Source: Basidiobolus meristosporus CBS 931.73
Taxonomy: Eukaryota > Fungi > Basidiobolomycota
Assembly: GCA_002104905.1 (NCBI GenBank)
Contig: MCFE01000103.1
Coordinates: 1 to 64,000 of the forward strand
DNA: 64,000 nt
Direction of reading: 5' to 3'
How positions within the stretch are numbered: the stretch's first letter is position 1; each line of letters begins with the position of its first letter. Made by a program: the position numbers and the translations under genes. Below are positions 2,198 to 9,449 of the stretch, one piece after another. The notes beneath the pieces are model-generated. The model made no database searches. It was not told where the DNA came from and saw only the letters and a list, made by a program, of their open reading frames with translations.

Positions 2198-5100
2198 TCA
2201 TGCTACATAACTGTACATATCTTTTTGAGAATCGACTCGTTCAATGTATTCCTTCTCAAGGAGCACATCGATACACTTCTTGATATCTGAGATTCTAGGC
2301 TTGAATCTTGATTGAAGCTGAGTGATCACTTCATTCATGAGTGCCACATGTTTCATCACTTTACGCGTCTTCATGATTCTCACGATTGCCGCCTTAAGGG
2401 ACCCACTGTCAGTTAACTTGCTCTCGTTGTCCAGCCTAGTCATACCCTCTCACCTGCATAAGAAGCTTCCGGTCTTCCTCGATTGTCTTGTGTGTCTCCT
2501 CGGCCTCCACCTTTTGCTCCGTTTTGACCGGGACGTTCAGATTCACCCGGATCTTTTTGCTACACACACACACGCACACACACACACACACACAACACAC
2601 TCTGCAGTAAGTTGCTGTCCTTCATGTACTACTGTTCGGTGCCTACATTACCTCTTGAAGTCCATATTCAAGTCGTATCTCGATCCCGCTTCGCCAACCG
2701 CTTGCCCTTGCGACAGTGTCAGCACCTTGGCTTTCACCAGGATCCCCAGCTGGCCATTGAGGACATCTGGGTTAAGTCCGGTGGCCGTCTGCAGCTCTTC
2801 GTAGGAGTACGACGTCCCATCGTTGTAGTGCAACAAAATGCCCATTTGATACACAGACACCTATTTAGTGCGAAAGGTGAGTATGCTGATGCCACATGTC
2901 CGTGCCCAACTCATATCTCAGTCACCTGGAAAGTGAACGACGTCTTCGCCTTCAGGTAGTGCGTCTTCAGCTCAGCCTTGGACAGCTGGAACAGCCAGTT
3001 CAGCTTCCTGCCACTGTGCTTGGATTGATAGAACCGTTGGAATCGCTCATATGTCTTGACAATCTGTGTTCGACCCCGGTTAGTTGTTTCCCTAGCCCTG
3101 CATCTTGTCTTACCACAACAACAGCTTCGTCCTGCCTACCTCGTCTGGGATGTTGAATGGTGTGGATGGTGCTGGGAGTGGCCAGGAGGCAGTCCCAAGA
3201 ACCAAGATGTAGAAATCTAAAGATAGACAGATTCCTGGTCAACATCGATCATGCTCGCACAGCCAAATCCTCACTTGCCTGTCAACTCATTGGCCTCGTG
3301 TGTCTCCAGCATCTTCTCCCTAAACGCATCATTCAGATCCTTGCTCACCCCCATGTCTGTGAACATCCGCTGCAGCTTGGAGGTGTACTCGTAGCCGCAC
3401 GCTTCCTGTAAGGCAGTTACTCATCAGCACTGCTGCTTGCTCAGATGGACGACGGCACACCCACTCACCTTGAGCTTGGATATCATGCTGGCTTCGGCAT
3501 CATCCGAAGCAGAGGTGCTGTTGACCAGACGCTTGGCCAGCATTTTCGAGTAGAATTTCTGGAACACATCTTTGTCCTCCACATACTTGAAAACTGTCAT
3601 CTGTAATAAAACTTAGTTTGTGGCTTATCTAAAATACAATAACTACCGCCATTACTAACAATATTGTTTAGTAAATCCTCCAGATCAGCCTCTTCAGGGT
3701 TTTTAGCGCTCTTTCTAAGCAGAGTATCACAATAACGAGCAACGAGTTCAGGGGACTTGGATGTTGAGGCTTTGCATACTTTGTTCCGATTTACAAACTC
3801 ACGACAAGCCTTGTCAAGCGAGGCAACGAACCCCGCCTCCCCACGAAAAGCGTTGGATACAAGATCGTTATATTTGATATGGACCTCAAGCAAAGCATCA
3901 ACATAGGTCTTGGGCTCCTGAATAGGGTAATGGTCAAATCAGTCTCTAAGCAGCAGAATTTCATAGAGAATTTACCATTGCCTCGCCCCCTTGGTCAGCA
4001 ATTCTTTCAATGGTATTGAGTCCAGCCTTCTTGACATGGGCTTCGAATTTGTTGCGAAGTGGGTTCAAACCTTCAGGAACTCTGAAAAGCAAAGTGTACA
4101 TGCGAAATAGATCTATATTATCGTATTCAGATGGCTGAATCAATACATTCAAACCAATGAAATGAAAGTCTACCTGCTTGCTTATCGTTGTCTAGTAGGC
4201 TTTGGAACTCATCCCACATTATCTCCATGTGTTTACTGACAAGCACATTCTCGCAAGTCGTGATCAGCTAGAAGCGTCCAATTAATATCAAAGCCCATCA
4301 CTTCATATTCGTATCTTGTACATACCGGCTTGTGAGTGCTAGGATGTAGGTAAAGCTGCACTCTGGAGTCTTCTTCTTGCAAACGAGTTTCGGTCTATCC
4401 AACAGCGAATAGTTGAGTCCTGGTTGCCCTAGCTATCTGTTTCTTGATAAATGTACCTTCTTCATGTAGTCGGTTACGCTGTTCTCGCTGACAAATTTCT
4501 CGCTCTCGTTCTTGTAATAGGTCTCGGTAGCGGAAAGAAAAGGGGACTCGAAGTATTTGACGTAGACATCTAGGGTGGTTTTGCTGGAATCGGAGTCATC
4601 CAATCCAAGAGAAACTTACATCCAGTGTGAGTACTCGCATTCGCAATGGACAAGGTGTATGGCGTCTACCATAAGATTCAACCACGTTCTTGATTAATCC
4701 AATCTCAATGGTCTCGCCATTACGTTGACGTTCGATCAGTTTGAGCACGGCGACCGTGATGTTATTTTGAACATGGGAGAAGAGATGGTCTCTCCAGCTT
4801 ACCAGAGCGAGCTAGAATGGTTGCAACGTTTTCACTAACCGCTCATTGGCTAATTATTGATATCGCTTCTCACTAACCGTGTTGACATCATAAATGTTTT
4901 TTCTACCTTCCTCTCTTTCCCTCTTTACCCAGTGTCGGTTTAGGTAAGAGAATAAATGGTGCACTACGCTGGAGGCAATGGTATAGCGCGACCATTGCTT
5001 GCTGTAATATTGGAGTAAGGACTCGTCCATATATTGCTCACATTCCTAAGTAAGTGCTCGTGAGTCTACTGGAGTTGAGAATTCAGGGTCATGCCAAAAA

Positions 5101-5563
5101 TATTGCTTTGTACCCCCTTAATAGTTGCCAAATGAGCCTGAAGATACTTGCAAAGATTATTGTATAGTTCGCTTCCCAATAAACTAGCACCTGGAGAAAA
5201 TCAAACGTAGGTTAGCCACATGGTGTTCACAAAGTCAACTAGCAAACAAACCTGGTGCTCCACGATTCAAATTAGCCAAAGAGTCGGAATTAAATGCCAA
5301 GGAGGCGCGCGTATTAGTGCAATAGTTGTAAACCCCGCTGTATAACGCAGGAATGAGTTATGGCTTAATTATGGTGTGACGCAAAGCTGAGGCTCCGGCT
5401 TAAAAACAGGCAATAGTGTTATTTAAGGATACGTATATAGACCCATATAACGGTCGTAGCTTAAACCCTCCTCGAGGCGACTATAGATTTGGTCGATGCC
5501 ATCCTCAAGTTGTCTCCAAGTGCTGTCGACATCACCTGGTGCTTGTGTTGAAGAGAAAGCCAT
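2198..5563 (-). CDS. CUL1: Cullin-1 (Cdc53/CUL1), canonical copy ('CUL1a'), multi-exon
   Basis: Spliced frame reconstructed by eye: [22 protein letters not shown]..., YMGLYT|GVYNYCT (helix H2), [10 protein letters not shown] (H5), [33 protein letters not shown] neddylation motif, C-terminal ...[19 protein letters not shown]. Introns are GT-AG except one GC-AG (3217-3278). Confidence 0.93.
2370..3591. repeat. Left arm (1222 bp) of near-identical inverted repeat shared by the two cullin genes
   Basis: Reverse complement matches 8063-9277 base for base through exons and six introns, apart from about 10 substitutions, a 1-nt intronic indel and a 6-nt microsatellite length difference. Confidence 0.95.
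2562..2600. repeat. Interrupted (AC)n microsatellite in a cullin intron; shorter partner (GT)n at 9052-9085
   Basis: Direct reading of both copies. Confidence 0.9.
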
Positions 5564-9200: not shown

Positions 9201-9449
9201 GGTATGACTAGGCTGGACAACGAGAGCAAGTTAACTGACAGTGGGTCCCTTAAGGCGGCAATCGTGAGAATCATGAAAACACGTCAAGAAATGGAACATA
9301 CCCAGCTCGTGAGTGAAGTGGCAACCCAATTATGCACAAAATTCAAGCCTAGAATCTCAGATATCAAGAAGTGTATCGATGTGCTCCTTGAGAAGGAATA
9401 TATTAAACGAGCAGACTACCAGAACGATGCATACATTTATGTAGCGTGA
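6207..9449 (+). CDS. Diverged cullin-1 paralog ('CUL1b'), multi-exon; coding integrity at the exon 2/3 junction is uncertain (possible pseudogene)
   Basis: Exons collinear with CUL1a at the same intron positions: [17 protein letters not shown]..., [43 protein letters not shown], then a C-terminal half near-identical to CUL1a including IVRIMK; ends ...AYIYVA. The homologous exon2-exon3 splice is one base out of frame; an alternative micro-exon route restores the frame. Confidence 0.7.
8063..9277. repeat. Right arm (1215 bp) of the cullin inverted repeat
   Basis: See left arm. Identity starts at TTCAAGTATGTGG (FKYV) and ends inside the Lys codon of IMK. Confidence 0.95.
9341..9400. repeat. Second, 60-bp identical inverted patch (partner 2247-2306)
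   Basis: ATTCAAGCCTAGAATCTCAG...GAGAAGGAATA is identical to the reverse complement of 2247-2306 while both flanks are diverged. Confidence 0.9.

Follow-up and report, generated by a model that had tools for sequence, protein, structure and literature searches.

The closest described counterparts of the locus reported here are mammalian gene pairs that undergo mosaic concerted evolution. In BMP8A/B (an inverted pair), DDX19A/B and TUBG1/2, consecutive exons together with their introns are more than 97% identical, in contrast to diverging regions elsewhere in these genes; the mosaic edges are stable, and ongoing conversion together with divergence of interaction domains has been proposed (PMC2720389). 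Conversion also reaches introns in Caenorhabditis paralogues, where it acts between adjacent copies of opposed orientation such as the inverted hsp16 modules, and long tracts may be several short ones summed, limited by divergent selection (PMC3966223). In the palindromes of the primate X and Y chromosomes, arm-to-arm conversion is GC-biased and the spacer can invert by recombination within one chromatid (PMC8327919, PMC8600007). Among human inversions mediated by inverted repeats, of which FLNA-EMD is an example, recurrent and mostly neutral inversion is expected (PMC3961182). Concerted evolution in a mosaic pattern, reaching into introns and known from inverted pairs too, is an established process, as is GC-biased conversion between arms (PMC2720389, PMC3966223, PMC8600007). 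Our literature search found no study of gene conversion in cullins, nor any of conversion in Basidiobolus.

We analyzed a stretch of 64,000 nucleotides from Basidiobolus meristosporus (the window), in which two cullin-1 genes, CUL-a on the minus strand and CUL-b on the plus strand, lie head-to-head; both are intact and transcribed and have 17 exons each. We consider it likely that this lineage-specific pair of SCF scaffold genes evolves as a mosaic through recurrent GC-biased gene conversion. The locus is a well-supported case of a known process, mosaic concerted evolution, laid out as a mini-palindrome. Compared with the mammalian pairs, the cullin genes are fungal, head-to-head and 643 bp apart, what is homogenized is the catalytic half of a scaffold for an E3 ligase, and the half that escapes conversion has evolved about 15-fold faster in one copy (PMC2720389). 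In Caenorhabditis it is mostly whole small genes that are homogenized, whereas here conversion operates at the level of domains in a 17-exon gene (PMC3966223). Primate palindrome arms measure 8–140 kb and usually hold whole genes, as against 1.2 kb for the cullin arms (PMC8327919, PMC8600007), whose edges cut both genes and leave half of each in the spacer and half in an arm.

CUL-a (2198–5563, 767 amino acids) was modelled by spliced alignment to full-length cullins, and CUL-b (6207–9449) encodes 741 amino acids. For CUL-a, 14 of the 16 introns were confirmed by joints displayed in contigs of spliced RNA (run X3), including a GC-AG intron at 3217–3278 that had been spotted by reading the sequence before the RNA confirmed it. 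Introns 1 (5338–5432) and 15 (2560–2651) are supported by homology only, the latter being the single exception among the six introns that lie in the arm. The positions and phases of all 16 introns agree between the two genes, with introns 2–10 of CUL-b placed by homology and phase only. One RNA contig, which starts at 6145 or earlier, matches CUL-b over 6145–6316 with zero mismatches, at a word depth of 51 versus 383 for CUL-a. The 643 bp between the two start codons (5564–6206) form a putative bidirectional promoter and contain a run of 14 G at 6008–6021, where short-read contigs break. The neighbors flanking the pair are an alpha/beta hydrolase gene and PIG-X.

The identity of both genes is supported by Pfam matches on their exon pieces to PF00888 (Cullin; E 1.8e-20 / 5.6e-17) and PF10557 (Cullin_Nedd8 / WH-B; E 9.9e-27 / 2.8e-24). 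Exon 11, which is common to both genes and was the only exon compared with solved structures, matched human CUL1 residues 450–493 best (E ~1e-18), ahead of CUL2 (1e-13) and of CUL3 and CUL4 (1e-9). The predicted NEDD8-acceptor lysine in its VRIMK motif is present in the translated last exons of both CUL-a and CUL-b. CUL-a is the canonical copy and shares 70–77% protein identity with the cullin of a relative, L003, which also served as an outgroup. In cullin-1 proteins Skp1 is bound by the first N-terminal repeat. In comparison with other fungal CUL1 proteins, the N-terminal half of CUL-b is 24–33% identical and that of CUL-a 36–55%. The closest protein matches (P0003, P0151 and P0152) belonged to contigs from fungi that are less closely related. 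In protein searches with the short exon 10 as query, which does not cover longer proteins, CUL-a had no match at or above 85% identity and CUL-b had zero matches.

A preliminary description of the locus had placed two inverted arms at 2370–3591 and 8063–9277 around a spacer of 4471 nt and a 643-bp promoter, and repeat search, blastn and gapped alignment returned exactly these coordinates. The left arm (1222 nt, minus strand with respect to the gene) runs from the 10th base of exon 11 through six introns and ends 23 nt into exon 17 of CUL-a, and the right arm (1215 nt, plus strand) is its inverted copy in CUL-b. The two align with 1204 identical columns, 11 substitutions and three indel events, giving ~99% identity, with up to 344 consecutive nt matching perfectly. 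Two of the three indels fall in the (CA)n microsatellite of intron 15 (2562–2594, with its counterpart at about 9059–9074), where the left-arm copy is 6 nt longer. Six of the 11 substitutions are clustered within 16 nt of exon 13 (3172–3187; 8467–8482 in CUL-b) and account for three of the five residues that differ between the arms. In terms of human CUL1, as read from the sequence, the arm extends from about residue 453, some 40 residues into the C-terminal domain, to just beyond the NEDD8-acceptor motif; it thus spans part of the four-helix bundle, the Rbx1-binding alpha/beta domain, WH-A and the start of WH-B. A coincidence of the inner arm edge with a splice site was considered and rejected, as identity begins 9 nt inside exon 11 (3591 and 8063). 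The spacer (3592–8062) is made up of the shared promoter together with, from each gene, exons 1–10 and the opening 9 nt of exon 11; a search of it for further cullin matches or long ORFs found none.

Outside the arms the two genes differ strongly, and the identity profile bears out the earlier picture of arms alike in all six introns and the microsatellite beside diverged N-terminal halves. Just beyond the arms, identity in the N-terminal halves falls abruptly to 40–77% per 100 nt with many gaps, while the last exon beyond the arms retains ~85–89%. Silent sites separate the three parts: dS is 0.029 in the arms (270 codons), whereas the N-terminal halves are saturated (pS 0.73; protein identity 45% over 408 codons) and the tail, comprising the last 57 codons, has a dS of 0.73 and a pS of 0.47. 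The six arm introns are 91–100% identical between CUL-a and CUL-b, as against the level of unrelated sequence for introns 1–10. In a tree of the N-terminal halves CUL-a and CUL-b group as sisters with support 93/84, their branches measuring 0.10 and 1.5, respectively. Thus, much of the protein divergence reflects acceleration of CUL-b, and the label of an old duplication, as first proposed, has to be qualified to that extent. These contrasts also carry a caution for cullin phylogenies: trees of the C-terminal half would indicate a very recent duplication and trees of the N-terminal half an old one.

The tail itself is not uniform. Directly outside the arm lies a diverged patch of 63 nt (2307–2369; 9278–9340 in CUL-b) with about 20 mismatches and four gaps, which encodes the residues following the VRIMKTR motif; both its a-type and its b-type version occur in the DNA contigs at ~1x each. 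Beyond it follows a run of 60 nt (2247–2306; 9341–9400 in CUL-b) that is perfect, all silent sites included. Judged from sequence, this run is a separate short conversion tract and the tail a mosaic. When metagenomes were scanned for an exact 38-nt pattern taken from this run, nothing matched. We considered one short-read record (run X1) as a b-type distal tail and rejected it, as a C at 2249 marks it as another copy, probably a third paralogue.

The outer patch also drew attention in the RNA, where one contig carrying CUL-a exons runs on into the b-type version of 2307–2369. The same contig adjoins an a-type distal tail and carries, at 3172–3187, a third haplotype that it has in common with the relative X4. 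As proof of a chimeric mRNA or of inversion the contig was rejected: a k=31 contig cannot phase the 790 nt of mRNA that the two genes share. The haplotype at 3172–3187 and the b-type patch on CUL-a exons may nevertheless mean that differences between alleles, nuclei or cultures make the locus more varied than a two-copy model allows. A stronger version holds that the locus is heterogeneous within one culture, with nuclei or haplotypes differing in their state of conversion and perhaps in spacer orientation, CUL-a mRNA carrying a b-type tail, and conversion visibly ongoing; we regard this version as rather unlikely. If it were true, and if similar inverted pairs of paralogues are common elsewhere in the genome, it would suggest that inverted repeats drive exceptionally active recombination across the Basidiobolus genome, with halves of paralogues being shuffled.

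Base composition sets the arms apart as well. GC3 is 0.72 in the arms versus 0.49 in the N-terminal half and 0.46 in the last exon, GC1+2 being flat at 0.42, and intron GC is 0.50 in the arms versus 0.39 elsewhere (Fisher p = 4e-4 and 2e-3). As a control, the single cullin gene of L003 showed no step, with GC3 of 0.49, 0.50 and 0.47 across the corresponding parts and introns at 0.28–0.39; GC was likewise flat in L001. The rise within the arms only would be the footprint of long-term GC-biased conversion. In principle the GC3 step could be older than the duplication, although the related single-copy gene is without it.

A second genome allowed the arms to be compared between relatives, using tables of k=31 contigs in which near-identical copies are collapsed. 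In X4, a relative ~12% divergent, the arm contig has 2.3x depth and is ~85–90% like the arms of the window, and the spacer contig ends on both sides in the same 30-mer in opposite orientation. X4 thus apparently carries an arm in two copies of its own, whose edges lie at about 2386–3351 instead of 2370–3591. Since the window's arms are ~99% alike, arms resemble each other more within a genome than between genomes. The partner copy in X4 is seemingly truncated and the spacer shortened, with the arm still present twice. This recalls the primate palindromes, in which deletions cluster in the spacer and the inner arm (PMC8327919, PMC8600007).

The composition and the relative bear directly on the alternative that the arms stem from one recent event, a long conversion or a segmental replacement in which CUL-a sequence took over the middle of CUL-b, with no ongoing process. 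The uniformly low dS of the arms (0.029) would fit such an event, and a single tract of 1.2 kb would not be unusual, given that conversion tracts are known to reach several kb (PMC3966223). However, a GC3 of 0.72 and an intron GC of 0.50 that are confined to the tract are beyond the reach of one event, nor does it account for a tail of intermediate dS with its own perfect 60-nt tract, or for a relative whose two-copy arm has other edges. We therefore hold a single event to be improbable. The preliminary description had inferred a recent homogenization by conversion between the inverted arms. Conversion itself is upheld by the three strata of divergence, the tail tract, the arm-restricted GC and the two-copy arm of X4, and the process looks long-running rather than confined to one recent event.

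Under the preferred reading, recurrent and GC-biased conversion, non-reciprocal recombination within the chromosome would keep the inverted arms ~99% identical, introns included, while the N-terminal, adaptor-binding halves and the last 57 codons escape the tract and diverge. Both the recurrence and the GC bias are suggested by the strata and the composition, and the donor is presumably biased towards the canonical copy. CUL-a stays canonical and yields the more abundant transcript, and the CUL-b protein evolves ~15-fold faster, yet from a gene that remains intact, spliced and transcribed. The sharp edges may arise because heterology beyond the arms blocks extension of the heteroduplex, possibly helped by selection for distinct N-terminal halves. 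CUL-b may have specialized in function. The pair would then offer an example at the resolution of domains, in which conversion holds the catalytic half of an E3 scaffold constant while one adaptor-binding half evolves freely, and it comes with both a footprint of GC bias and an apparent contrast across genomes.

The geometry invites a further explanation, in which crossovers between the arms flip the spacer at a frequency sufficient to yield alternative cullins that matter to the cell. Arms of 1.2 kb and ~99% identity around a 4.5-kb spacer would permit this, and the palindromes of primates, like other segments flanked by repeats, commonly have inverted spacers (PMC8327919, PMC3961182). With FLNA-EMD the locus shares a segment between highly identical inverted repeats, but both orientations have been demonstrated for FLNA-EMD only, and its repeats, unlike the cullin arms, are not part of the genes that are re-paired (PMC3961182). 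Inversion is likewise documented for the primate palindromes, whereas at the cullin locus the k=31 contigs do not span an arm, so that a second orientation was not seen. The RNA contig that links CUL-a exons to the b-type patch could be taken in favor of a flip; it is, however, unphased over 790 nt, and an a-type distal tail next to a b-type patch is unexpected from a simple flip.

The protein products also speak against such a switch. Since little distinguishes the arms, flipping the spacer would re-pair the N-terminal halves with C-terminal parts that differ in five residues and the last 57 codons only, so that, apart from the 3' flanks, little would be exchanged. Programmed DNA-inversion switches (Hin/Gin, shufflons and the 2-micron FLP system) use a dedicated recombinase and short specific sites. 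The cullin locus resembles them in having inverted repeats around a segment whose flip re-pairs coding parts; it differs in that the re-paired parts are almost identical and in that no recombinase gene was found in or beside the spacer, which holds no other gene either. Additionally, the relative's seemingly truncated partner beside an arm still in two copies points to a mechanical rather than an adaptive process. We find a functional flip-flop very unlikely, and a regulated module-swapping switch is unsupported; it would be remarkable if true, although the flip would alter very little protein sequence anyway. Of the proposal that the locus is invertible and yields two-by-two cullin variants, the geometry stands, but the variants would be nearly the same proteins.

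It is extremely unlikely that the near-identity of the arms is an artefact of assembly or polishing, such as a collapsed or mis-joined repeat. The assembly and the short-read contigs do disagree at some positions in the spacer (5735, 5978, 5990, 6102 and 6363), and the arm haplotype seen in RNA is absent from the assembly. We examined Logan short-read contigs (k=31) of two DNA runs, none of which spans an arm. The arm appears as one collapsed contig that ends exactly at 2370 and 3591 and has ~1.6x the depth of the spacer contigs, and the two inner junctions and the two forms of the outer edge each occur at ~1x. Two spacer contigs of 1x depth, 3597–6020 and 6008–8092, make up the path between the arms, the second entering the right arm up to 8092. 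Such a graph, with one spacer path ending in the same arm on both sides, requires an inverted repeat, and the N-terminal halves are far too diverged to be alleles. The arms are thus real, and the doubt first raised about the assembly is largely removed. Lastly, purifying selection on the catalytic half alone has a negligible probability as the cause of arm identity: the arm does encode the most conserved part of a cullin, but its six introns are 91–100% identical while introns 1–10 are at the level of unrelated sequence, and its silent sites stand at a dS of 0.03 against saturation in the N-terminal halves.

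We modelled the two head-to-head cullin-1 genes by spliced alignment guided by full-length cullin proteins. CUL-a (5563..2198, minus strand) has 17 exons encoding 767 aa and CUL-b (6207..9449, plus strand) has 17 exons encoding 741 aa, both with open frames. Pfam Cullin and Cullin_Nedd8 domains were found in exon pieces of each gene, and the two share all 16 introns in position and phase. A sequencing run labelled 'DNA?' (X3) is in fact spliced RNA, as its contigs match CUL-a exons without mismatch and end in sequencing adaptors. Among the joints displayed from this run, 14 of the 16 CUL-a introns are confirmed; intron 1 (5338-5432) and intron 15 (2560-2651) do not appear there and are supported by homology. 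The confirmed set includes a GC-AG intron with donor GCAAGT at 3217-3278, which was spotted by reading the sequence (the RNA joint reads CT..GC on the plus strand) and is kept in the other arm at 8376-8437. CUL-b is also transcribed, because an X3 contig covers 6145-6316 without mismatch and ends at the predicted first donor site. Introns 2-10 of CUL-b are supported by homology and phase conservation. As a rough measure of expression, X3 word depth was 51 for CUL-b versus 383 for CUL-a.

Repeat search, blastn and gapped alignment all recovered the inverted cullin arms of the preliminary description, with a core at 2370-3591 and 8063-9277; the 4471-nt spacer and the 643 nt between start codons given there were likewise reproduced from the gene models and sequence. 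Compared base by base, the left arm (1222 nt) and right arm (1215 nt) share 1204 identical columns, with 11 substitutions and 3 indel events. Six of the 11 substitutions cluster within 16 nt (3172-3187), and a (CA)n tract accounts for two of the three indels. At the inner edge, identity per 100 nt rises from 0.4-0.77 (gap-rich) to 0.92-1.00. Exon 11 aligns with human CUL1 residues 450-493, equivalent to position 40 of the C-terminal domain chain 1LDK_B, so the arm begins ~40 residues into the C-terminal domain; its other end lies just past the VRIMKTR motif, which contains the NEDD8 acceptor lysine. On the outer side, identity is ~0.85-0.9 in the last exon and falls to noise past the stop codons. 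This tail is a mosaic: next to the arm lies a heavily diverged 63-nt patch (2307-2369), then a 60-nt run of perfect identity (2247-2306), and beyond that the copies differ again. With pS near 0.5 in this region, twenty codons free of silent differences make a separate, short conversion tract the likely origin of the 60-nt run.

The inverted repeat is not an assembly artefact. In two DNA short-read runs from this organism (X1 and X2, as k=31 Logan contigs), the arm is one collapsed contig ending exactly at 2370-3591 with a word depth of 410, compared to 252-256 for two spacer contigs and 290 for the flank. Both inner junctions were seen (3562-3626 without mismatch, plus a contig reaching 8092), as were the two alternative sequences adjoining the outer end of the arm, each at ~1x. 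The spacer is continuous with the same arm sequence at both ends in opposite orientation, and the short-read graph therefore requires an inverted repeat. These contigs differ from the window at single spacer bases (5735, 5978, 5990, 6102 and 6363) and break at the G14 run at 6008-6021; the base differences could reflect a strain or haplotype difference or assembly consensus errors.

To compare divergence across regions, we used Nei-Gojobori estimates. Over the N-terminal half (408 codons), the two proteins are 45% identical, with a saturated pS of 0.73 and dN of 0.45. Over the arm (270 codons), identity is 98% and dS is 0.029, while the last 57 codons show 70% identity and a dS of 0.73. Introns 11-16 are 91-100% identical and introns 1-10 are at the level of unrelated sequence.

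A further run (X4) bears the same species label yet is ~12-13% divergent, with 321 substitutions and 38 gaps in one contig of 2598 nt. Its arm-equivalent contig (997 nt, ~2386-3351) has a depth of 64, and a 2810-nt contig over the CUL-a N-half and promoter has a depth of 28. The latter starts and ends with the identical 30 nt in opposite orientation, which is the signature of a spacer between inverted arms. Compared with the arms of the window, the X4 arm contig is ~10-15% different. Thus, as judged from tabulated collapsed contigs and not from the DNA itself, arms are far more alike within a genome than between genomes, the classical criterion of concerted evolution, and tract edges differ between the window and X4, where the inner arm edge is at ~3351. 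The X4 spacer is only ~2.75 kb and comprises the CUL-a N-half, its promoter and, from there to the inverted arm end, just 174 nt that do not align; at a threshold of 80% likeness, no X4 contig matched the N-half of CUL-b. The partner copy thus seems to be truncated from mid-exon 12 upstream, its N-half deleted, in keeping with the 'spacer plus inner arm' deletions that palindromes typically undergo (PMC8327919). A CUL-b orthologue could instead lie elsewhere in that genome or have diverged beyond 80%. That two arm copies persist in X4 despite this apparent truncation suggests that homogenisation follows mechanically from the inverted repeat and is not kept up for the sake of CUL-b.

The preliminary description also proposed an invertible, module-swapping locus. 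The geometry fits, as a crossover within the arms would flip the spacer (3592-8062) and join each N-half and promoter to the arm, tail and 3' flank of the other gene. In primate palindromes and other segments flanked by repeats, such inversions occur often and are mostly neutral (PMC8327919, PMC3961182). Four points weigh against calling this locus a 'switch'. The contigs are all of k=31, with none across an arm. Five residues differ between the arms and 17 of 57 between the tails, so the four possible proteins would be two N-halves on nearly the same C-terminal part. Apart from the 643-bp intergenic region, the spacer contains just the halves of the two genes, with no recombinase. Lastly, X4 keeps two arms with a seemingly truncated partner. 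Judged from sequence, any inversion would be of small consequence.

Conversion between the arms, in contrast, was strengthened by composition as well as by the divergence strata, the tail mosaic and the X4 contrast. GC3 is 0.72 in the arm, 0.49 in the N-half and 0.46 in the last exon, while GC1+2 is 0.42, 0.42-0.43 and 0.37-0.39, respectively. Intron GC is 0.50 in the arm and 0.39 in the N-half, a significant difference in both genes (Fisher p = 4e-4 and 2e-3). The control gene on L003, a contig of a related fungus, has GC3 of 0.49, 0.50 and 0.47 over the same three regions and intron GC of 0.28-0.39; composition is likewise flat in a second control (L001). A silent-site GC rise restricted to the converting segment is the known footprint of GC-biased conversion, which direct measurements have shown in the palindromes of Y chromosomes (PMC8600007). 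Such an arm-restricted rise cannot come from a single recent event, and the data support long-running conversion.

The L003 gene (L003:556-4350, a Logan contig of SRR32476547) is a complete 17-exon cullin-1 gene whose protein is 70-77% identical to CUL-a. Most exon structure is common to both, and exons 1-10 are equal or nearly equal in length. The 555 nt upstream contain no second cullin, and the gene is a useful single-copy outgroup. In N-half trees, CUL-a and CUL-b are sisters with 15 other cullins (support 94/90) and when L003 is added, as (L003,(a,b)) (93/84), so the duplication is probably specific to this lineage. A constraint uniting CUL-a with L003 was not rejected (AU p = 0.15). Silent sites and introns show the duplication to be old relative to the arm. 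In the tree with L003, the CUL-a branch has a length of 0.10 and the CUL-b branch one of 1.5; acceleration of CUL-b accounts for much of the divergence between the N-halves. Both arm copies look canonical (75-77% identical to L003), and the N-half and tail of CUL-b are clearly less canonical than those of CUL-a, which suggests that the surviving arm sequence came mostly from the canonical copy.

The pair resembles the 'mosaic' concerted evolution of BMP8A/B (an inverted pair), DDX19A/B and TUBG1/2 (PMC2720389), nematode paralogues of either orientation in which interlocus conversion reaches into introns (PMC3966223), and sex-chromosome palindromes with GC-biased arm-to-arm conversion (PMC8600007, PMC8327919). 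Our literature search turned up no reports of conversion between cullin genes, and none of gene conversion in Basidiobolus. The cullin pair is therefore a new instance of an already known process.

One RNA contig (17, from X3) follows CUL-a exons without mismatch through the arm, enters the b-type 63-nt patch and ends at the common 60-nt run, where an a-type distal-tail contig (depth 241) abuts it. Among the X3 contigs aligned to the window, none carries the a-type patch. Within 3172-3187, contig 17 is b-type at only two of the six positions (3173C and 3185A), a haplotype common to X4 and absent from both window arms, which rules out a graph chimera of the two assembled arms. The DNA runs also show a G/A polymorphism at 2324. 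Possible causes are extra haplotypes or nuclei in other conversion states, culture differences or consensus errors; the b-type patch on CUL-a exons and the third exon-13 haplotype hint at extra haplotypes or ongoing conversion. We did not count contig 17, the 2324 polymorphism or the spacer differences as evidence of inversion or chimeric mRNA.

A third cullin-1 paralogue, ~77-81% identical to CUL-a exons, is transcribed (RNA contig record 18, depth ~225). It was not found in the window by tblastn and is probably DNA record 2 of X1. The genes around the CUL-a/CUL-b pair are unremarkable (an alpha/beta hydrolase, PIG-X, transketolase and seryl-tRNA synthetase). The transketolase (13565-15646, minus strand, 693 aa) is a single uninterrupted ORF amid intron-dense surroundings, possibly an acquired gene or one poor in introns. 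Additionally, ~36000-64000 is a block of direct repeats spaced 4.2-6.2 kb and ~10 kb apart at 75-91% identity, whose copia-type gag and retroviral aspartyl-protease ORFs identify it as nested or tandem LTR-retroelement debris.
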